DNA of 63,052 nucleotides, the filler included, from Salisapilia sapeloensis CBS 127946 (lineage: Eukaryota; Protista; Oomycota), in assembly GCA_023334545.1 (NCBI GenBank). It is 8 parts of 8 records of this genome, joined end to end, with 100 filler letters (N's around TTAATTAATTAA, not from the genome) between each part and the next. Parts side by side here need not be neighbours in the genome. Positions count along the whole stretch, not along the records: positions 26,952 to 35,004 come from JAADVB010000498.1; 7 more parts are not named here. One strand, 5' to 3'. Below, piece after piece: positions 26,952 through 35,004 of this stretch. Position numbers and translations under genes: made by a program. Position 1 is the first letter of the stretch; the number at the start of each line of letters is the position of its first letter. The notes below the pieces were generated by a model, which saw nothing but the letters and a program-made list of their open reading frames with translations, was not told the origin of the DNA and ran no database searches.

Positions 26952-27092
26952 TAAGATATATGTTGTAGATCTTATCAGAAAAGATGTGTAAGTAGGGCAG
27001 TCTAAAAGTATCAAATAAACTCACTTCTAATTTCAATTCGTTTCCCCTTAAGCTAGTGTAAGCTAAGTTACGGAGGATCTAAGCCCGTAACA
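26952..27092 (+). repeat. 3' part of the 5' LTR (ends CCCGTAACA)
   Basis: Ends in CA just before the PBS. Its first 16 nt equal 34989-35004. Inr/FPR-like TCACTTCTAATTT at 27021. Reconstructed LTR is 141+141-16 = 266 bp. Confidence 0.85.
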
Positions 27093-27094
27093 CC

Positions 27095-27102
27095 TGGTAG
27101 CA
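27095..27102 (+). promoter_or_regulatory. Primer-binding site, 8 nt complementary to a tRNA-iMet-type 3' end (UGCUACCA)
   Basis: TGGTAGCA located 2 nt after the LTR-terminal CA. Confidence 0.7.
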
Positions 27103-27124
27103 CTTTGCAGTTCTTTCACCGACC

Positions 27125-28150
27125 ATGGCGACTTCAGCAGCGACCGCGGCTGCGGGTGTGGCGCCTGCGAGCGTTTTGGCAGATCGGACGTTGTATCCGC
27201 ATCTGAATGATATCGAATGGAACGCGCTTGGCAGGATGGCCAAGCGCACGGGAGACACGGCGGTGGAGCTGATTCTTCAGAATGGGTCTGAAGTCGATCA
27301 ACACCAAGCCGCGCTTAAATGGCTTGACGGCGAGGCTCTCGCGTTGAGTCAGCAGCCGTCGTCGACGGCTGCGAGATCTCCCTTCATCAAGTTGGAAGTA
27401 TCAGCTTATGGAGGTGAGGGAGGTATGCCTCTCCAACGTTGGTTTGTGGAGGTTGAGACTGCCATCAGGGCGCGTCAGATCTCTGACGCTGAAATGCAAG
27501 TCGTGTTCATGATGTCACGTCTGAAAGGCCAAGCGAAGAATTGGGCCTTTGGACGTCGGTTGGCAGACCCGACGTGCTTCTCAACTCTTGACGAACTCAA
27601 GTTGGAGTTGGAGACGACGTTCGACCCGCCGGAGAACGAGATGCGCATTCGTTCTGACTTGTTGAGGATCAAGCAAGGCAAATCGAGCCTGAATGACTAT
27701 TGTCAAAAGGCCCGTTATATGATTTCCTGCTTGCGTACGGCGCCATTGGATATGGCGACCCAAGTCACCGTTTTCTTGCAAGGCATGAAAGACGGTCCTG
27801 TCAAGGTCGAAACGTTCCGCCAGCGTCCTCCTACTTTTGAGGACGCGATCCTTGTTGCGTTGCGTGAGGAGTATACGCTACGCCAAGCTCATGGCGGCCA
27901 AATCCCAAATTGGCTAGGCTCCCAACCTCAAGTGGGCAGCGGTCCTGAACCGATGCAAGTTGATGCTTTAGCTGCGGACAATCGCCCGCAGCAACGCGTT
28001 GGAAATGCCCAACGCAAGAAGCAAGTCACTTGCTTCCGTTGTCAGAAGACCGGCCACTACGCGAAGGATTGTCGCGCCCCTATGCCTGTCACCCTCAATG
28101 TGATCGAGGGAGACAATACTGCATCGGACCCAAACGGGGACGATCAGTAG
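27125..28150 (+). CDS. gag: Gag (capsid domain and CCHC zinc knuckle)
   Basis: LQRWFVEVE, AKNWA, LNDYCQKARY, PEPMQVD, CFRCQKTGHYAKDC. Confidence 0.93.
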   Translation: MATSAATAAAGVAPASVLADRTLYPHLNDIEWNALGRMAKRTGDTAVELILQNGSEVDQHQAALKWLDGEALALSQQPSSTAARSPFIKLEVSAYGGEGGMPLQRWFVEVETAIRARQISDAEMQVVFMMSRLKGQAKNWAFGRRLADPTCFSTLDELKLELETTFDPPENEMRIRSDLLRIKQGKSSLNDYCQKARYMISCLRTAPLDMATQVTVFLQGMKDGPVKVETFRQRPPTFEDAILVALREEYTLRQAHGGQIPNWLGSQPQVGSGPEPMQVDALAADNRPQQRVGNAQRKKQVTCFRCQKTGHYAKDCRAPMPVTLNVIEGDNTASDPNGDDQ

Positions 28151-31100
28151 GCGTAGGGCCACCTACTGGTCAGCGAAGGGAGTCGAGGGAGGTGGCACCT
28201 CACTCTCCTGGCCCACAACCGCACGAAGTGCGTTTACATGCTACCACTGCTCGTGGAGACGATCGACTTATCATCATCGATCTTCACGTTGCAGGCGGCG
28301 CGCGGAAACTCCGCGCGCTAATCGATTCTGGCGCCACGAATAACTTTGTTCGTTCCCAGAGTCTCCAGTTCCTACCTCCAGGAACTATTGTGAAGGAAGG
28401 CCCGACCGAAGTCATCGTCCGCATGGCGGACGGAAAGCCGCGGAGACTCCCGCGGCAAGACGTCAATCTGAGGTACAGATTCGATGACTTTGTCGGCAGA
28501 GATGACTTCCTCGTCGTTGAGCTTGACGAGAAGTTTGATGTTATCCTTGGGATGCCATGGCTGTTGCGACATCAGCCCAGCATCAACTGGCTTACGAAAT
28601 CCGTTCGTAAGAAGCAAGGATTGAATATGGATCAAGTGTGTTCCATATTGCATTCGGTTCCGACCAACTGGCGTGACGTGTCAGTCGTCGACCCTTCCAA
28701 CCACACCCCCCCGTTCAGTGTCTCTCCAGAGAGCGATGGCCCTGCATGCACTGAATGGCAACTCGCCAGGTCTACGTCCGGGCGTCGGACGTCTAGAAGC
28801 CAGTCGCGGCCCACGACTGGGCGCAAGAAAGAGTATTTGCGCTCTCCAAATCGTTTCGCAGCCTTATCAGAGGACGAAGGACTGGACGATGTGGCCGCGT
28901 CTGTAAAACAGACGCCAAATGAGAGCGTCGCTAACGTGAGCGACGCGATTGAAATTGCGCCGGTTACCCCGGCGCCAAAAGCGAAGAAGAAGAAGACCGG
29001 CAAGCGGAATGTGTCCGCTTGCAACGCCGGTCGACAGTCGAAGGCGCAGAATGTGTCTGTGCCTACGACGAGTGAAATCGCAGTTATCACTCACTCGGAA
29101 GAAGGTCCGGTGAGCGAGATTACGCGGCTCGATAACCCGCCGCGTGAAGGTGATGCGATCACTCAATTGGAATCCCTGAGTTGGGATGGCTTTGTGGATG
29201 CGCTACGAACTGAGCAAGTTGAGCAAATTTGCGTAGTGACCACCAAAGCCGATGGTCAAGATCGCGCTCGTGATGATACGAGCGCTCCGGCGAAAACCGC
29301 TAAAGAGGAACGGTTTGCTTCCCAGTCATGGGAAGCCCTCAAGGCAAGCGGTAGCCCTGTGTACGATCTTGCGTGGGAATTTCGGGATATCTTCCCCGAA
29401 ACAGTGCCGCAGCAGTTGCCTCCGGACCGAGGCTTCCGGCACGAGATCGACCTCGTGCCCGGCACGAAGTATTGTGTTACTCGTCAATGGCCACTGCCAC
29501 GTGAGCAAGTGAAGTTCATCGACGAGTTCTTTGAGGCACGTCGGAAGTCGGGGCAGGTGCGTGAGAGCACCTCCCCACACTCCACGCCGACGTTTTGCGT
29601 GAAGAAAGCCACTGGTGGATGGCGCATCGTGCATGCATACAACAAATTGAATGATGCTACGATACCAGCGCAGACACCAATTCCGCGCAAGGACATGATC
29701 TTAGATACCATGTCAGGAAGTACCATGTTCAGTACTATCGACCTGATGGATGGATTCTATCAGATCCTGATGCGCGAGGACGACATCCCGCTCACCGCGG
29801 TGAGCACTCCGAGCGGGATGTTATGGGAGTGGCTCGTCATGCCAATGGGACTCAAGAATGCACCGGCAACATTTAACCGAGTGGTGTCTCAGGTTCTTCG
29901 ACCTCATCGAGAGTTCGCGCCTTGCTATTTCGACGACATCTTCGTCCATAGCAAGGCATCCAATGTCCAAACTGAGTTGGACGTACACCTTGATCATTTG
30001 AGAAAGGTCTTCACTTCGATGAGAGAAAACAAGCTATACGCTCGTTTGAAGAAATGCTTGTTCTGCGTCGGTGAGATACCGGTGCTCGGTTGCTATGTTG
30101 GCAAGAATGGATGCCGACCAGACCCCGAGAAGGTCAAGTCGATATGCGACTGGCCTGTGCCTAAGACACCCAAGCAGCTTCGACAATGGCTCGGCCTTGC
30201 GAACTACTTGCACAAGTACGCGAAAGATTACGCGGGACTGGTGCAGCCGTTGTCACGGCTGCTGAAGAAGGATGTCGAGTGGCAATGGGGTGACCCAGAG
30301 CAGAAGGCTTTTGACGCTGTCAAGAAGCGGTTGATGGAAGCGCCGGTGTTGACCCTACCGGATCCTGACCGTCCCTTCCACGTGGTGTGCGATGCGAGTA
30401 ACTTCGCCATCGGATGTGCGCTCATGCAGACCGATGATGACGGTCATGAGCGCGTGGTGAGTTACCAATCCCGGCAGCTCAAGTCTGCAGAGCTGCGATA
30501 TCCTGTGCATGACAAGGAGCTTCTAGCGATGCGATATTCGCTAGTCAAATTCCGCGTTTATCTTCTTGGAGAAGAACGCTTTGTGATCTACACTGATCAT
30601 GCGTCGTTGCGTACGGCTACGAAATCGCCGCACCTTAGCGACCGTATGGCACGGTGGCTCTCGTTCTTCTCGCAGTTCAATTTCGTCGTCTTCTATAAGC
30701 CTGGGAAGATGAACATCATCGCCGACGCGTTGAGTCGGCGCCCAGACTATGACCCGAATGAAGACGAGGCATATGACGACACTCCTTGTCCGAAGTGTGA
30801 GACGGAGGTCATCAATGCCACCGAAGTTGTGCCGCGCCTGTCTTTGACAGACGCTATCCAAGAAGCTTACCGCAAGGATGCCTTTTGTCATGAGCTCATC
30901 GAGTATTTGAAGACTCTCGATGTCGAGGCTAAGAAGAAGCTATCGGCACGCACACGCGCGCGCTTGCATCGATACTCGCTCCATCGGTCGATGCTGTTGT
31001 ATGCCATCGATGACATGGATACGCCACGCGTCGTCATTCCCAACGACGCTGACCTGCGTGCACGCATATTGCACGAGTATCACGATGCGCCCAGCGGTGC

Positions 31101-33777
31101 GCATGCTGGACGCGAGAAGACATTTAACTCGCTGTCGCGTGACTATTACTGGCCCCATATGTACAAATGGGTCCGTAAATGGGTACGCTCATGTGAGACA
31201 TGTCAGCGAGTGAAACCGACTCCTGCATTGCGAGCTCCGTTGCAATCGCTTCCGATACCATCGGATGCCTGGAAGTCCGTCAGCATGGACTTCGTCTTCG
31301 GACTGCCACCGGATAAGGCCGGTCGCACTGGCATCCTAGTCTTCGTGGATCGATTGAGCAAGATGGTCCATCTTGCTCCTGTCAAGAAGACGGTTTCAGC
31401 GGAGGAGTCCGCTGCCATCTTTCTCGACACTGTGTTCCGACTACACGGGATGCCTGAAAGCATCGTGTCAGATAGAGACCCGCGTTTCACGGCGTCTTTC
31501 TGGCGCCGGATCTTCCGGCGCGTTGGAACCAAGTTGGACATGTCCACGTCCGCTCACCCAGAGACGGACGGACAAACAGAGCGGGTAAACCGCACTCTCG
31601 GAGATATACTGCGCAGCTACGCAGCGAGCTACACGTCATGGAGCGACATGCTACCCATGGCTGAGTTCGCCTTGAACAATGCTGTCCACTCATCAACGGG
31701 AGTAACTCCGTTTTATGTCAATTACGCCCGTCACCCACGGACGCCTGCGGCGCTCGGAATCACACCGAGCGCACCCAGTGCTTCGTATGGAGGGGGAGAG
31801 ACATCGAACAATTCGACGCCGTCGTCGAGTCAACAGACAAGCAATGAAGCGTCGGAACCGAGTCCGACGCAAGAAGCGGAACACACGTCCGCAGCTATTG
31901 ACTCGACAAGTGAGCGCGAAGCGACGCTACCGAGAGCGTCGCACGAGGATATTGGAGACGACTCGCAGGATAGGCCTGTACGAGATACACTCGCTCCAGC
32001 GTGGCCGACAGCACAACATGGTGCTGTGTCATCGCCCAGATCATTCCGAGATGTTGTGCTAGGAACACCGAACCGTGCGGTGTCCAGTCGACAGCATTCG
32101 AGCACCACGTCGGTCACTGTGGACCGACGTCAAGGGAGCGACGCTATTGCATCCAGTTCACTGAATCGTGCGGTGTCTGGTCCAGTGCAATCCAGCGTCA
32201 CGTCGGTCACTGAGGACCGACGTCAAGGGAGCGACGCTATTGTGCCCAGTCCACCGAATCGTGCGGTGTCTAGTCAAGCACAATCAAGCGTTACGTCGGT
32301 CAATAAGGACCGACGTCGAGATAGCGATGAGTCAGCGGACATCGTCGCAAGTCACGAGACAGAGCCCGTGACAGAAACCGACCCAACAAGAGCCGAGTTG
32401 GCCGCTGATACAGTACTAAGTCAGCGGCAATCGATACTGCGATATGTGAGAGACGCAGTAGCAGACGCGGTCGACAGACAAAAGGAACAGTCTGATCGAT
32501 CTGGTCGTCACAACCAGGAGACCTTCCGACCTGGGGATCAGGTCCTGTTGTCGACGGCAGAGCTGCCGCAGGATATCCTCGGTCAAGCGGAGTCTAAAGT
32601 CACAGCCCGGTTCATAGGGCCGTTCCGAGTGAGAGCAAAGCAAGGGACTGCGTATACTTTGGATTTACCTAGTGGTATACGCTTACACCCGACGTTCTAC
32701 GTCGGGCGTTTGAAGCGATATCATCCATCGCTATCGCCTACTTCCTTGGCGGATTCGCCGGAAGCTTATCCGGCACGTCGATCCCGGCATTCCGAAGCGC
32801 CTCCCGAATCAGGCGCACATTCTGGTTCGTCTGCTGGAGCTCGTTCCGGATCATGCGACGGTCATTACCCGTCGCCCGATAGGCCTCCTGCAACCCCTCC
32901 ACGTCGCCTAGGAGGATCGCAATGTCCCCCTCGTTCTGGTAACTCCGATCGTCCAGCTCGATCATCCAGCCCGGTCGCGTTCCACGAACAAACGGAACGT
33001 CCTCTTCCGTCTGACCCTCTTCACGCACCGGTTGATCCGGCGGGCGTCTCGTCTCATGAGAACGCGAATGCTCCATGGCAGGGGCGTCTGCGACAGAGGG
33101 GCGCGTCGGCGGCGGAGTCGAGGGCGCCGGTGCGGACACCGGCGCAGGAGCCACGAGTGGAGGACGAGCCTCCGTATACGCGGGCACAGGATCGCGTCGA
33201 GTCGGCTCAGGGCCACGCGGCGCTGCTGCCGCGTAATCACGGTTCGACGTCGGAAGGGACCTCGGAGGAGAGTCCCGCACTTCGCGGCGCTGCGAATGAA
33301 CCTCGTATGCATCACGATACGGATGATAGCGATGGCCGCGTCGACTCGAGGAGCTCGACGCAGGAGAATAATCGCGCTCGCGATACTGGTCGTATGGATC
33401 GCTACGAGCGGGACGGTGCTCCCGCTCTGATTGATGGCTCGGGTCATAAACGTTGGATCGTTGATCGTATTGTGGATCATTGCGATGACTCCCCTGATAT
33501 GCAGAGGAGTGATACGACCCATACGACGGGTCGTGGCCGTAGTAGCCGCGCGAGCGTCGCTCGTCCTCGCGCCGATCCTCCTGGCGATCATAATAGTTCG
33601 GATCGTAGTATCCCGAGCGGTCGCCTCTACCGTGTCCGCTGGCTTGGCTATTCGGTTGGCTCCGATACGTGGGAGCCTCGCGGCCAGTTGATGGAGGATG
33701 TGCCTCACGCCGTGGAGGACTACGAGTCTCTTCTCGCCGCGTCCGGTGAATCGGACGCCCATGACCCGACTCTCTAA
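28030..33777 (+). CDS. pol: Pol polyprotein (protease, RT, RNase H, integrase, GPY/F module, chromodomain), probably entered by frameshift at about 28135
   Basis: LIDSGATNNF; IDLMDGFYQ, MPMGLKNAP, YFDD; CDASNFAIG, TDHASL; HHCC (HDAPSGAH...CETC); SMDF, SDRD, QTERVN; FIGPFRV; WIVDRIV...YRVRWLGY...DTWEP. No stops in 1915 codons. Confidence 0.97.
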   Translation: MLPLSEDRPLREGLSRPYACHPQCDRGRQYCIGPKRGRSVGVGPPTGQRRESREVAPHSPGPQPHEVRLHATTARGDDRLIIIDLHVAGGARKLRALIDSGATNNFVRSQSLQFLPPGTIVKEGPTEVIVRMADGKPRRLPRQDVNLRYRFDDFVGRDDFLVVELDEKFDVILGMPWLLRHQPSINWLTKSVRKKQGLNMDQVCSILHSVPTNWRDVSVVDPSNHTPPFSVSPESDGPACTEWQLARSTSGRRTSRSQSRPTTGRKKEYLRSPNRFAALSEDEGLDDVAASVKQTPNESVANVSDAIEIAPVTPAPKAKKKKTGKRNVSACNAGRQSKAQNVSVPTTSEIAVITHSEEGPVSEITRLDNPPREGDAITQLESLSWDGFVDALRTEQVEQICVVTTKADGQDRARDDTSAPAKTAKEERFASQSWEALKASGSPVYDLAWEFRDIFPETVPQQLPPDRGFRHEIDLVPGTKYCVTRQWPLPREQVKFIDEFFEARRKSGQVRESTSPHSTPTFCVKKATGGWRIVHAYNKLNDATIPAQTPIPRKDMILDTMSGSTMFSTIDLMDGFYQILMREDDIPLTAVSTPSGMLWEWLVMPMGLKNAPATFNRVVSQVLRPHREFAPCYFDDIFVHSKASNVQTELDVHLDHLRKVFTSMRENKLYARLKKCLFCVGEIPVLGCYVGKNGCRPDPEKVKSICDWPVPKTPKQLRQWLGLANYLHKYAKDYAGLVQPLSRLLKKDVEWQWGDPEQKAFDAVKKRLMEAPVLTLPDPDRPFHVVCDASNFAIGCALMQTDDDGHERVVSYQSRQLKSAELRYPVHDKELLAMRYSLVKFRVYLLGEERFVIYTDHASLRTATKSPHLSDRMARWLSFFSQFNFVVFYKPGKMNIIADALSRRPDYDPNEDEAYDDTPCPKCETEVINATEVVPRLSLTDAIQEAYRKDAFCHELIEYLKTLDVEAKKKLSARTRARLHRYSLHRSMLLYAIDDMDTPRVVIPNDADLRARILHEYHDAPSGAHAGREKTFNSLSRDYYWPHMYKWVRKWVRSCETCQRVKPTPALRAPLQSLPIPSDAWKSVSMDFVFGLPPDKAGRTGILVFVDRLSKMVHLAPVKKTVSAEESAAIFLDTVFRLHGMPESIVSDRDPRFTASFWRRIFRRVGTKLDMSTSAHPETDGQTERVNRTLGDILRSYAASYTSWSDMLPMAEFALNNAVHSSTGVTPFYVNYARHPRTPAALGITPSAPSASYGGGETSNNSTPSSSQQTSNEASEPSPTQEAEHTSAAIDSTSEREATLPRASHEDIGDDSQDRPVRDTLAPAWPTAQHGAVSSPRSFRDVVLGTPNRAVSSRQHSSTTSVTVDRRQGSDAIASSSLNRAVSGPVQSSVTSVTEDRRQGSDAIVPSPPNRAVSSQAQSSVTSVNKDRRRDSDESADIVASHETEPVTETDPTRAELAADTVLSQRQSILRYVRDAVADAVDRQKEQSDRSGRHNQETFRPGDQVLLSTAELPQDILGQAESKVTARFIGPFRVRAKQGTAYTLDLPSGIRLHPTFYVGRLKRYHPSLSPTSLADSPEAYPARRSRHSEAPPESGAHSGSSAGARSGSCDGHYPSPDRPPATPPRRLGGSQCPPRSGNSDRPARSSSPVAFHEQTERPLPSDPLHAPVDPAGVSSHENANAPWQGRLRQRGASAAESRAPVRTPAQEPRVEDEPPYTRAQDRVESAQGHAALLPRNHGSTSEGTSEESPALRGAANEPRMHHDTDDSDGRVDSRSSTQENNRARDTGRMDRYERDGAPALIDGSGHKRWIVDRIVDHCDDSPDMQRSDTTHTTGRGRSSRASVARPRADPPGDHNSSDRSIPSGRLYRVRWLGYSVGSDTWEPRGQLMEDVPHAVEDYESLLAASGESDAHDPTL
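28129..28196 (+). promoter_or_regulatory. -1 programmed ribosomal frameshift signal: slippery C CCA AAC, 6-nt spacer, predicted H-type pseudoknot
   Basis: The X_XXY_YYZ heptamer is in the gag frame and pol is in the -1 frame. Stem 1 is GATCAGTAG/CTACTGGTC (28142-28150/28163-28171); stem 2 is GCCAC/GTGGC (28158-28162/28192-28196). Confidence 0.85.
32068..32340 (+). repeat. Three imperfect 93-nt tandem repeats, each holding a perfect 9-bp inverted repeat
   Basis: Units start at 32068, 32161 and 32254. ACGTCGGTC-N6-GACCGACGT occurs at 32107, 32200 and 32293. Confidence 0.9.
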
Positions 33778-34606
33778 GTGCACGCCGGAGTCGCAGGACT
33801 ACGTCATCCAACTGAGAGGACGGCGGGTCCCTTCTCATACTCTCATCCCATTCTTCAATCGTGTATGTACGATTGTCACGCTCACACTCTCGACACCCTC
33901 CCATTGCGGCCGCATAGCACGGCCGCCTACCACGCTCACACTCGGCGTGTACTTGCTCGCTGAGGGCGCTCCGCGAGTAACGAGCATTGTATTCCTCGCG
34001 ATGTTGGATATGAATCTCGATATCAGGATCATGATCATAGCGTTTCATGAAGTCATTCCACGACGCACGTAGTGCGTCGTACCGCACGTTCATGGACTTG
34101 TTCTTGCTCGCTCGATATCGACGAAAGAGCCCCTTCACCTTGTCAATCGGGTGCTTCAATCGAATCTCGCCGACGTCATAGAGATCCAGTGGATGGAGAC
34201 TGCCTTTTGAATAGGTCATTCGCGACCGGACTTCTTGGTAGCCGGTCGCCTGCGAAGTCTCTCTGGTTGACTGACCGGCAGTTGTCGTTTGCGAAGATTG
34301 CGTCGAAGGCCCCGATATCGTTGTTGGAGCAGATGCAGCCGATGTCTCGGCTGCCAATGTCGTTTGAGGTGTGCTTGCAGCCGGTTGTTTGGCTGCCGAT
34401 GGCGTTTGCATATCGACGGACTCAGCAGTGCTTGGCGGAGCTTCCATGCTCTCCTCGGGCACAGCGGTTGCTTCAGTGGAACGTCCAACGTCAGTGGACT
34501 GGTCGTTGGCACTGTCGTCTGCGCCCGTGGTCACGGGCGCCTCACTCCCAACAGTGTCTGGGGTGTTGTCCGAGGCCGTTGGCATTTGCGAATGAGTATA
34601 CACCAT
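32738..34606 (-). CDS. Antisense accessory ORF of the retrotransposon (622 aa; unknown function)
   Basis: ATG start; globular-looking helical domain with H-x3-C-x5-C-x7-C-x2-C lying outside pol; Y/D/R-rich disordered middle; C-terminal heptad coiled coil; Inr-like motifs upstream. Confidence 0.75.
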   Translation of the reverse strand: MVYTHSQMPTASDNTPDTVGSEAPVTTGADDSANDQSTDVGRSTEATAVPEESMEAPPSTAESVDMQTPSAAKQPAASTPQTTLAAETSAASAPTTISGPSTQSSQTTTAGQSTRETSQATGYQEVRSRMTYSKGSLHPLDLYDVGEIRLKHPIDKVKGLFRRYRASKNKSMNVRYDALRASWNDFMKRYDHDPDIEIHIQHREEYNARYSRSALSEQVHAECERGRRPCYAAAMGGCRECERDNRTYTIEEWDESMRRDPPSSQLDDVVLRLRRALRESGHGRPIHRTRREETRSPPRREAHPPSTGREAPTYRSQPNSQASGHGRGDRSGYYDPNYYDRQEDRREDERRSRGYYGHDPSYGSYHSSAYQGSHRNDPQYDQRSNVYDPSHQSEREHRPARSDPYDQYRERDYSPASSSSSRRGHRYHPYRDAYEVHSQRREVRDSPPRSLPTSNRDYAAAAPRGPEPTRRDPVPAYTEARPPLVAPAPVSAPAPSTPPPTRPSVADAPAMEHSRSHETRRPPDQPVREEGQTEEDVPFVRGTRPGWMIELDDRSYQNEGDIAILLGDVEGLQEAYRATGNDRRMIRNELQQTNQNVRLIREALRNAGIDVPDKLPANPPRK

Positions 34607-34665
34607 CGTGGTGAGCGCAGTCGAGGAGGAAGTGACGATTGCTTGCGAGGTTGATGGCGAGTTCC

Positions 34666-34695
34666 GGAATGAGGAATCGCCAAGCGAGAATGAGC
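34666..34695 (-). promoter_or_regulatory. Two oomycete Inr-like motifs on the antisense strand upstream of the antisense ORF
   Basis: Minus-strand GCTCATTCT (34687-34695) and CTCATTCC (34666-34673), 60-90 nt upstream of the ATG at 34606. Confidence 0.45.
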
Positions 34696-34850
34696 AAAGG
34701 CAAGCGTCCGATCAAGTCGGACGCAGAAGAATTGGAGAAGAGTCGGAAGGAACCCGGCGCTAACTCAGGATGATGACCAAAGGCAATGCGGCGCGTGCAA
34801 GCCTTCACCCGGATGTTGTATAGAGATGCAATTTGTGTGTTTGCACTCTT

Positions 34851-34863
34851 AAGACGGGGGTGG
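34851..34863 (+). promoter_or_regulatory. Polypurine tract
   Basis: AAGACGGGGGTGG immediately before the LTR start TGTAACGGG. Confidence 0.75.
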
Positions 34864-35004
34864 TGTAACGGGTATGCGCCCGTTACTTTAGGCTAGGTTG
34901 TTTCCTTTCTACTTTACGGTTTTTAGAGTCCTGTACCCACTTGGTACAGGTTTGTTACATGTTTAGATGACCTACTCACTGTCTGGTTTAAGATATATGT
35001 TGTA
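34864..35004 (+). repeat. 5' part (U3) of the 3' LTR
   Basis: Starts TGTAACGGG, an imperfect inverse of the CCCGTAACA end; follows the PPT; contains two 8-bp hairpins. Confidence 0.85.

Follow-up and report, generated by a model that had tools for sequence, protein, structure and literature searches.

Does the long open reading frame that runs antisense to the end of pol in an oomycete retrotransposon encode a protein of its own, or is it a shadow of the gene on the opposite strand? Gypsy elements make up the bulk of the genome in oomycetes, among them major pathogens of crops and animals, and shape its gene-sparse, effector-rich compartments. We analyzed such a frame in a window (the whole stretch of DNA analyzed, 63,052 nt) from Salisapilia sapeloensis CBS 127946, where positions 26952 to 35004 come from the record JAADVB010000498.1. 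The original prediction had proposed an element-encoded antisense accessory gene that is no shadow of pol, and this proposal is supported by the homologues, a confident predicted fold, purifying selection, and a position and codon phase that are kept among relatives. The ORF is very probably a real, selected protein-coding gene, and the best explanation overall, which we consider likely, is a genuine accessory gene typical of one clade of chromodomain-bearing oomycete Ty3/gypsy elements.

The element itself has the following features (window coordinates):

26952..27092, plus strand: contig start; 26952-26967 is a 16-nt repeat of the contig end, the rest the last 125 nt of the LTR
27125..28150, plus strand: gag, 341 aa, with Retrotrans_gag and a CCHC knuckle; intact (ORF list, Pfam)
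28030..33777, plus strand: pol open frame, -1 frame relative to gag; intact (ORF list, Pfam)
32533..32724, plus strand: integrase C-terminal SH3_Tf2-1, pol residues 1502-1565 (Pfam 3.9e-11)
33616..33729, plus strand: chromodomain core, pol residues 1863-1900 (Pfam PF00385)
34851..34863, plus strand: polypurine tract read from the sequence, directly 5' of TGTAAC
34864..35004, plus strand: first 141 nt of the LTR, beginning TGTAAC and continuing at 26968-27092

The LTR is split over 34864-35004 and 26968-27092 because the contig is permuted, with a 16-nt terminal redundancy. Joining the two contig ends gives a total LTR length of ~266 bp and near-inverted LTR termini (TGTAACGGG... / ...CCCGTAACA), which supports the LTR boundary, and a primer-binding-site-like TGGTAGC follows the LTR end at 27095. 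The pol domains are ordered protease, RT, RNase H, integrase (H2C2, core, SH3), low-complexity linker and chromodomain (Pfam). This PR-RT-RNH-IN arrangement, in which pol ends in a chromodomain and which the relatives share, upholds the earlier chromovirus label to the extent of a chromodomain-bearing Ty3/gypsy element, though not as anything narrower. The chromodomain match to PF00385 spans profile positions 14-52 only, at 27.5 bits against a cut-off of 25.1, and the domain is 36-42% identical to those of relatives (tblastn). The linker between SH3 and chromodomain is long (~300 aa in the window, ~100-190 aa in relatives), and 1086 nt separate the pol stop from the LTR.

An open antisense frame across the pol tail

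Two features lie on the minus strand of this region:

32738..34606, minus strand: probable antisense accessory gene; ATG start, 622 codons plus stop, no internal stops or frameshifts; intact
34607..34863, minus strand: candidate antisense promoter and 5' UTR spacer, 257 nt, from the 3' LTR boundary/polypurine tract to the antisense ATG

The ORF list and translation confirm the ATG-initiated minus-strand ORF of 622 aa as first described, with its ATG 257 nt inside the LTR boundary. The frame lies within the element, antisense to gag-pol and on the 3' side of pol, and in addition overlaps the pol tail: 829 nt, in DNA that is otherwise non-coding, fall outside pol (from the pol stop toward the polypurine tract), while 1040 nt (~346 codons) are antisense to the integrase-chromodomain linker and the chromodomain. 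Pol codon position 1 faces antisense position 1, and the overlap is thus out of codon-for-codon register, as had been noted. The antisense stop codon falls a few codons past the last invariant SH3 residue, the same relation as in relatives. An in-frame Met at about residue 130, just ahead of the conserved domain described below, may serve as an alternative start, and alignments show that some homologues begin directly before this domain.

The frame is considerably longer than base composition or the pol protein would allow. In 32738-35004 the longest minus-strand stop-free run is 657 codons, none of 2000 first-order Markov simulations gave a run longer than 344, and the 276 non-overlapping codons stayed open in one of 5000 simulations. 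When the synonymous codons of pol are permuted, ~5 antisense stops are expected in the overlap of the window element and none is observed (P = 0.003); both strands are open over ~346 codons, as had been noted. Similarly, given the pol protein, 4.5-9.8 antisense stops are expected and none is observed in each of 10 elements (P <= 0.0034 in each), so that the second frame is open beyond what the protein and codon usage of the first allow; the overlap ranges from 570 to 1040 nt across elements. The G+C content of the region is 0.60-0.65, and other frames there hold ORFs of 86-273 aa.

Transcription would start from a promoter belonging to the gene itself, within the 130-260 nt adjoining the 3' LTR. 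Three initiator-like YCAYTYY matches (motif as defined in PMC3599244), at -87, -66 and -29, hint weakly at such a promoter in the spacer, as do, again weakly, the seven initiator-like motifs found across seven lineages (~2 expected); a combined INR+FPR motif was not found in the candidate promoter spacers of these seven lineages.

Modules of the predicted protein

The antisense product divides into the following modules:

34175..34606, minus strand: N-terminal Thr/Ser/Ala/Pro-rich disordered region, residues 1-144 (AlphaFold pLDDT 33-42)
33761..34159, minus strand: conserved all-helical domain, residues 150-282, eight predicted helices; almost wholly outside pol and family-defining
33884..33949, minus strand: putative zinc-ligand cluster, [H/C]220-x9-C230-x7-C238-x2-C241
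32972..33760, minus strand: Arg/Pro/Ser/Tyr/Asp/Glu-rich disordered region, residues 283-545 (pLDDT <50), opposite the chromodomain and part of the linker
32789..32971, minus strand: C-terminal amphipathic helix, candidate coiled coil, residues 546-606 (61 residues; pLDDT 80-89, single helix)

The modules foreseen in the original prediction (a Cys/His helical domain, a Y/D/R-rich disordered region and a coiled coil) are recovered in the AlphaFold model, the ligand columns and the heptad pattern, and the Cys/His stretch and C-terminal helix are present in the translation. The helical domain was correctly placed, with the exception of its end, which is not at the Cys cluster, as three more helices run to about residue 282. 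Its mean pLDDT is 89.6 (alignment of 23 sequences), and its GC1/2/3 values of 0.60/0.44/0.59 resemble those of gag and pol. Searches of Pfam, PDB and BFVD by sequence and fold returned no match to the domain or the antisense protein, and on these searches and the model the domain is predicted to be a new fold family without known relative. Among the 23 sequences, the putative zinc-ligand columns hold H or C in 22, C in 20, C in 21 and C in 18, with His/Cys interchange at the first. The net charge of the domain is near neutral (-5 to +7, two poorly aligned members left out), and nucleic-acid binding by the domain itself is therefore not indicated.

The remainder of the protein is simpler. The N-terminal disordered region (T 17%, S 15%, A 13%) varies in length and is missing from some homologues in the alignments, and residues 1-117 carry no coding-like GC1/2/3 pattern. 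In the Phytophthora members the second disordered region has a strongly basic, Arg/Ser-rich composition. Its short 'APTY' motif is an antisense shadow of the chromodomain core and faces the chromodomain in each of the four elements examined; the pol frame on the other strand in part determines the composition of this region. The C-terminal helix keeps a single uninterrupted heptad register, with L, I, V or M at 11 of 17 a/d positions, is encoded opposite the low-complexity integrase-chromodomain linker, and coincides in position with sub-threshold coiled-coil Pfam matches in relatives. Order and disorder thus appear complementary in the models, the antisense product being disordered opposite the folded chromodomain and helical opposite the low-complexity linker.

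Conserved context and purifying selection

To residues ~135-280, 22 homologues were found at E <= 1e-3 among 1.84 billion representatives (best E 5e-13; 26-42% identity). All 22 are short proteins annotated as hypothetical, and the seven named sources are all oomycetes: Phytophthora capsici, P. oleae, P. megakarya, P. idaei, P. nicotianae, Nothophytophthora and Pythium insidiosum. The gene is currently annotated as scattered 'hypothetical proteins' or left out, and we found no published description of this oomycete antisense gene in the literature. In all five loci with the full arrangement (L001-L004 and L006), the homologue is antisense and just 3' of a related pol (52-66% identity), and the antisense ORF spans the chromodomain and stops at the SH3 boundary. 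L010 shows the same arrangement, and the permuted scaffold of L007 is consistent with it. Loci L001-L009 were found through annotated antisense proteins, and this sample is therefore biased to intact ORFs.

An unbiased sample, in which loci were picked by pol SH3 alone, comprised eight close metagenome relatives and 49 distant gypsy loci. Seven of the eight close relatives have an antisense open segment of 329-604 aa ending at SH3, compared with a median of 75 aa and a maximum of 180 in the distant loci, none of which reaches 300, and in the pol tails of the close loci SH3, linker and Chromo form one open frame beneath the antisense ORF. The helical domain is present in five of the seven assessable close loci; the close relatives L017 and L062 keep a long antisense ORF and a coiled-coil-like tail with no detectable N-terminal domain, which suggests that the domain may be dispensable or replaceable. 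Codon phase is identical in all 12 elements compared (the window, L001-L004 and seven pol-selected loci), and the L006 gene model, with a predicted intron, has a different phase at its start. The ORF is carried by most copies of the lineage and extends to distant species, unlike a one-off transduction, and the families occur in multiple copies per genome.

Sequence comparison indicates that the antisense frame is under purifying selection. In the non-overlapping part, dN/dS in relatives is 0.18-0.28 in the antisense frame versus ~1-2.9 in four other frames, with small counts for P. insidiosum (11 synonymous and 6 non-synonymous differences in the closest pair). Low dN/dS is shared only by the wobble-sharing complement of the antisense frame, which carries 5-7 stops, and variable sites by antisense codon position number 16/15/37. 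Between two P. capsici elements, for which dS is saturated, antisense dN/dS is 0.27 in the domain, 0.38 in the coil and 0.73 in the disordered region, and in the coil segment the antisense frame scores 177 (z 25) and the pol frame 66 (z 3.6). Neither a frame broken in intact relatives nor a dN/dS near 1, both named beforehand as grounds for rejecting the gene, was found when looked for.

Possible roles, alternatives and known systems

An accessory gene kept clade-wide from Pythium insidiosum to Phytophthora implies an unrecognised layer of element-host interaction. We tentatively suggest that the product is an oligomeric, nucleic-acid- or chromatin-associated factor serving the life cycle of the element; a structural or enzymatic protein is not the reading that we favor. 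The [H/C]-C-C-C cluster would bind zinc, the C-terminal helix would drive oligomerisation and the Arg-rich disordered region would contact nucleic acid, with the factor controlling element expression or handling element RNA. More speculative still is a dual-coding module at least as old as the Pythium insidiosum/Phytophthora split, in which a gene for an orphan-fold zinc-binding protein was acquired downstream of pol and extended by overprinting the linker and chromodomain, its product being an element-encoded regulator that cooperates with or opposes either host RNA silencing or the targeting of heterochromatin by the chromodomain. If true, stramenopile retroelements would thereby gain their first described accessory regulatory gene. 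Of the roles first put forward (suppression of silencing, a part in condensates or packaging, restriction of copy number), none is supported, as the data do not discriminate between them.

A real gene whose product restrains the element, as copy-number control or self-repressor, is an alternative to which we give a low probability. It could act as a dominant-negative oligomer, or through antisense transcription that feeds small-RNA silencing and leaves the protein a secondary part. Transcripts antisense to pol would pair with genomic RNA into double-stranded RNA, the protein has a predicted oligomerising helix, and every conservation result is compatible with restraint, since selection in long-lived element lineages also favors self-limitation; however, selection at the protein level indicates that the product matters and not transcription alone, and the multiple copies per genome also weigh against it. 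A transduced host gene fragment, carried passively and with no role in the element, is considerably less probable. Some additional ORFs of LTR elements do stem from transduction (PMC11963269), and one homologue, P0002 (L005), sits among host genes without gag-pol, but this protein proved to be the remains of an element, its reading frame continuing into a host gene with a PH domain, the true host start aligning with its residue 297; a free-standing host family was not found among the 22 homologues, every examined context is an element, and a passive passenger would not combine a dN/dS of 0.2-0.3 with a phase unchanged between Pythium insidiosum and Phytophthora. Such ORFs can fuse to neighbouring host genes, as P0002 illustrates, and this is a warning for annotation.

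Cis elements of LTR elements reside near the polypurine tract, which this region adjoins, and a packaging, reverse-transcription or export signal near the 3' end could make the ORF incidental; this is highly improbable, as substitutions concentrate at antisense third positions, amino acids stay conserved, at 30-40% identity, beyond the divergence at which the DNA can be aligned, and the protein alignment gives a high-confidence fold. Least credible is a chance ORF with no product, a by-product of high G+C and low-complexity pol sequence: despite the G+C-rich setting with its other ORFs and the composition of residues 1-117, it is contradicted by the confident fold from divergent homologues (a divergence that rules out assembly duplicates of one sequence), the position and phase kept in 12 elements, the simulations and permutations, the frame-specific dN/dS and the lack of any such ORF in the 49 distant elements.

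With the accessory gene as the preferred reading, its place among known systems can be considered. Antisense accessory genes are already known from plant Retand elements and deltaretroviruses, and we rate the oomycete form as new. The aORFs of plant Tat/Retand Ty3/gypsy elements (Grande, RIRE2, Retand) mostly encode a TRP28 domain, PF04195 (PMC11963269). Like the oomycete gene, they lie antisense to gag-pol between pol and the 3' LTR, occur in most copies and distant species of their lineage, and are suspected of a regulatory or nucleic-acid-binding role (PMC11963269). In contrast, the present host is an oomycete and the element bears a chromodomain, the pol-to-LTR region is ~1.1 kb rather than 2.9-6.6 kb (PMC11963269), and half of the gene shares its DNA with pol, chromodomain included, an overlap of which PMC11963269 makes no mention for plant aORFs. 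Neither the window protein nor 14 relatives match PF04195 or another Pfam family, and we rejected membership of the TRP28 aORF family on this ground, the chromodomain, which sets the element apart from the non-chromovirus Tat lineage, and the short distance from pol stop to LTR.

Similarly to the antisense proteins of deltaretroviruses and lentiviruses (HTLV-1 HBZ, to which the original prediction had pointed, APH-2 and HIV-1 ASP), the oomycete protein is encoded on the minus strand at a retroelement 3' end with a promoter presumed near or in the 3' LTR, and HBZ also has a C-terminal coiled-coil-type helix; the likeness is one of architecture and position only. An HBZ-type antisense bZIP was rejected: the heptad helix is present, but the antisense protein matches no bZIP family in Pfam at E <= 1 and no PDB entry by sequence or fold. 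Likewise rejected was an env-like third ORF of gypsy elements, given the antisense orientation, a hydrophilic N-terminus with no long hydrophobic stretch, and an AlphaFold prediction of disorder and soluble helices. Chronos and Archon are oomycete LTR elements defined by an added archaeal-type RNase H, and Chronos, like the present element, has a chromodomain after integrase (PMC5348765); antisense ORFs are not mentioned in that paper. Identity with either was rejected, as the window pol has only gypsy-type RNase H (PF17917 and PF17919, pol residues 753-883) and no second RNase H in Pfam.

The element shares with chromoviruses the gag CCHC knuckle, protease, RT, RNase H, integrase, SH3_Tf2-1 and a terminal chromodomain, and differs from others in that its long SH3-chromodomain linker doubles as antisense coding sequence. 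The gene offers both a predicted new fold family and a practical marker to classify this element clade. In viral overprinting, same-strand overlaps are usual. As in overprinted viral gene pairs, both frames are open beyond expectation, order in one product lies opposite disorder in the other, and the more recent member of the pair abounds in disorder and simple helices; unlike them, the overlap is sense/antisense and belongs to a eukaryotic retrotransposon in one phase from Pythium insidiosum to Phytophthora, providing a replicated eukaryotic case of long antisense overlap with complementary order and disorder in two products.

Antisense reading frame of the intact element

The piece at 26952-35004 is a single LTR retrotransposon with no stops or frameshifts in gag, pol or the antisense ORF, and the 622-aa, ATG-initiated minus-strand ORF that the original prediction had placed at 32738-34606 is present exactly as claimed. 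The other features of the element are as follows.

27125-28150, plus strand: gag, with Retrotrans_gag and a CCHC knuckle
28030-33777, plus strand: pol, open, in the -1 frame relative to gag
34851-34863, plus strand: polypurine tract, with TGTAAC directly after it at 34864

Pol encodes protease, RT, RNase H, integrase (H2C2 and core), an SH3_Tf2-1 domain (residues 1502-1565) and a chromodomain (residues 1863-1900), and of the antisense ORF 1040 nt run antisense to pol, the other 829 nt lying past the pol stop. The overlap is not codon-for-codon, because pol position 1 faces antisense position 1. Within 32738-35004 the longest minus-strand open run measures 657 codons, while Markov simulations never exceeded 344. 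When the pol protein was held fixed and synonymous codons were permuted, 4.5-9.8 antisense stops were expected in the overlap and none was observed in any of ten elements (P ≤ 0.0034 each); codon shuffling similarly gave P ≤ 0.0006 for the openness of the overlap. The codon phase was the same in 12 of 12 elements tested, and the gene model at the Phytophthora oleae locus (L006), which includes a predicted intron, has a different phase at its start.

An identical 16-nt sequence stands at both ends of the piece (26952-26967 and 34989-35004), and the sequence preceding a primer-binding-site-like TGGTAGC (27095) terminates ...CCCGTAACA, a near-inverse of the LTR start. Given this end repeat and the near-inverted LTR termini, the contig is a circularly permuted assembly containing a single LTR of ~266 bp, and the same two features bear out the LTR boundary first proposed from sequence inspection. 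The permutation reflects either two LTRs collapsed by the assembler, the usual case, or, less likely, a one-LTR circle. An 8052-bp ENA scaffold (L007) shows a like permutation. A search of the piece for tRNA genes returned none.

Within pol, three tandem 93-nt units (32066-32344; 100/83/69 % identity) lie between the integrase core and SH3, outside the antisense ORF, and code for 31-aa Ser/Val/Thr-rich repeats with a 24-nt near-palindrome per unit, forming a second expanded low-complexity insert in the C-terminal region of integrase. At the pol end (33394-33777, pol residues about 1789-1915), the Chromo Pfam match covers profile positions 14-52 only, at 27.5 bits, where the matches of relatives span positions 1-52/53 at 39-57 bits; the chromodomain appears to hold an insert of roughly 45 residues between its first strand and core, lengthening the overlap with the antisense gene.

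Distribution among related elements

Homologues were located antisense and directly 3' of a related pol (52-66 % identity) at two loci in Phytophthora capsici, two in Pythium insidiosum and one in P. oleae, and at all five the gene span includes the chromodomain and the stop falls within ~10-50 nt of the end of the SH3 domain. The same arrangement occurs in a read-archive contig, where 130 nt separate the ATG from the LTR boundary, and a permuted version of it in the 8-kb ENA scaffold. Since all of these loci had been found via antisense proteins, we drew a second sample of metagenome loci by the pol SH3 domain alone, yielding 57 with sufficient downstream sequence, 8 of them close (at least 47 % SH3 identity) and 49 distant. 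In the close loci, minus-strand open segments running up to the SH3 boundary measured 604, 570, 507, 416, 403, 397, 329 and 231 aa, the 329-aa segment being cut by the contig end and the 231-aa segment belonging to a degenerate copy. In the distant gypsy loci no antisense open segment exceeded 180 aa, and the median length was 75 aa. A long antisense ORF at the SH3 boundary is a character of this clade.

The pol tail lies wholly under the antisense ORF in all seven intact close loci, and in six of these SH3, linker and Chromo form one open frame; the seventh (L016) has the SH3 match and the open frame without a Chromo match. The profile of the conserved antisense domain matched in 5/7 assessable close loci. 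At the other two, L017 and L062, the long ORF is kept and a profile search did not detect the domain; either another sequence may have taken its place at the N-terminus, or the domain may be too divergent to be recognized. The ORFs of these two loci (L017 540-1748, minus strand, 403 aa; L062 60-1580, minus strand, 507 aa) occupy the same place and phase and have coiled-coil-like C-termini. Degenerate relatives also occur: one P. insidiosum copy has a single antisense-frame stop, a second P. insidiosum copy is gapped, and pol is split in several cases.

Other gypsy fragments, nested or clustered, adjoin some of these elements (L001 15955-17154, plus strand; L004 9-857, minus strand; L006 20276-21682, plus strand), and the L004 and L006 fragments come from different families, with 23-27 % pol identity.

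One homologue, P0002 from Nothophytophthora sp. Chile5 (L005 10001-11662, annotated as 553 aa), is a chimera: an antisense-gene remnant, made up of the domain and about 150 aa, continues in the same frame into a host gene for a PH-domain protein, and no gag or pol was found near P0002 in L005. A reading of P0002 as a domesticated copy or host ancestor was rejected, as its last 257 residues correspond to the N-terminal part of a PH-domain host protein, and the start of that protein falls opposite P0002 residue 297, the position aligned with the start of paralogue P0030 (88 % identity). An inverted duplication in L005, suspected from two 436-aa ORFs, was likewise ruled out.

Conserved domain, selection and the sharing of DNA by two products

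A phmmer search with antisense residues 118-276 against 1.84 billion representative proteins (E ≤ 1e-3) returned 22 matches, of which the top one had an E-value of 5e-13 and 42 % identity. Neither the antisense protein nor the gag of the element at 26952-35004 has an entry as a called gene. All named matches are oomycete 'hypothetical proteins', and the remainder come from metagenomes or read-archive assemblies; the named species are P. insidiosum, Nothophytophthora sp. and Phytophthora capsici, oleae, megakarya, idaei and nicotianae, a census limited by the 50 % identity level of the library. A metagenome scan with the domain alignment gave no confirmed locus. Arg, Lys, Leu, Ser-Trp, Phe, Glu, Cys and Trp columns of the alignment are invariant or nearly so, and an AlphaFold model of the domain, built from 23 sequences only, has eight helices with a mean pLDDT of 89.6. 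An [H/C]-x9-C-x7-C-x2-C pattern keeps its positions in 18-22 of the 23 sequences, with His and Cys interchanging at the first; such exchange is typical of metal ligands, and the domain may bind zinc through this putative ligand set. Comparison with Pfam gave nothing meaningful, a PDB profile search gave 0 matches, and Foldseek against PDB and BFVD returned noise only (best E 2.1 and 1.3, respectively; TM ≤ 0.27).

Among three gap-free P. insidiosum copies (91-97.5 % identical), dN/dS in the non-overlapping part was 0.18-0.28 in the antisense frame and about 1-2.9 in four other frames; the sole other low value fell in the wobble-sharing complementary frame, which has 5-7 stops. Variable sites in these copies were distributed 16/15/37 over the antisense codon positions. 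Similarly, domain dN/dS between two P. capsici elements was 0.27, with dS saturated, and the G+C content by codon position of the non-overlapping domain part (0.60/0.44/0.59) is like that of gag and the pol core.

Full-length AlphaFold modeling predicted disorder at residues 1-144 and 283-540, a confident fold at 150-282 and one helix at 546-606 (pLDDT 80-89), the last with LIVM in 11/17 a/d positions of a single heptad register and with sub-threshold coiled-coil Pfam matches at the same position in relatives. This helix is encoded opposite a Ser/Arg/Pro/Ala-rich pol linker, and over this stretch the two P. capsici elements score 177 in the antisense frame (z 25) versus 66 in the pol frame (z 3.6), with an antisense-frame dN/dS of 0.38. 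Opposite the chromodomain, the model shows disorder in the antisense product, and antisense-frame dN/dS reaches 0.73. The sole motif common to the disordered middle, 'APTY' or 'APMY' (33665-33676 in the window, antisense residues 311-314), lies exactly opposite the chromodomain core in 4/4 elements (the window, L001, L002 and L004), and is therefore a shadow of selection on pol without a function of its own. Between distant lineages, C-terminal segments showed no significant sequence similarity in either frame and share only their helical and heptad character.

Order and tolerance thus alternate between the strands, a conserved helix facing the linker and antisense disorder facing the chromodomain. 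Overprinting is expected to leave the ordered part of one product opposite a tolerant part of the other, and the arrangement suggests an origin of the antisense gene's C-terminal half over a pre-existing pol tail.

Candidate promoter, possible role and known counterparts

We scanned 300 nt ahead of the antisense ATG (34607-34906 in the window, minus strand, reaching 43 nt into the LTR), and the corresponding stretches of the related loci L001-L004 and L007-L009, for the oomycete initiator YCAYTYY. In antisense orientation 7 matches were found versus about 2 expected, present in most lineages scanned, and almost none in the reverse orientation; no FPR partner at the canonical spacing of an INR+FPR pair was found in these stretches. 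Initiator-like motifs are consistent with the antisense gene having its own candidate promoter beside the 3' LTR.

The antisense protein is modular, non-secreted, non-enzymatic-looking and selected within element lineages. Its C-terminal helix may mediate oligomerization, and its Arg-rich disorder, whose net charge ranges from +13 to +24 among the Phytophthora members, could contact nucleic acid. We tentatively propose, with considerable doubt, that the product forms oligomers and serves the element's own cycle as an accessory factor associated with nucleic acid or chromatin; the main alternative is that it is self-limiting or silencing-related.

A study of oomycete elements makes no mention of antisense ORFs (PMC5348765), and we found no description in the full-text literature of such ORFs in oomycete gypsy elements or of the homologues' locus tags. 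The original prediction likened the gene to the antisense bZIP of deltaretroviruses; the likeness holds in position, and no search with the antisense protein gave a named match to extend it. In plants, Retand/Tat elements carry accessory ORFs in antisense orientation in the region from pol to the 3' LTR, most encoding TRP28 (PF04195), and the Grande antisense product is nuclear (PMC11963269). The oomycete gene resembles these ORFs in position and persistence, but differs from them in its domain, host, element lineage and long co-encoding with pol.
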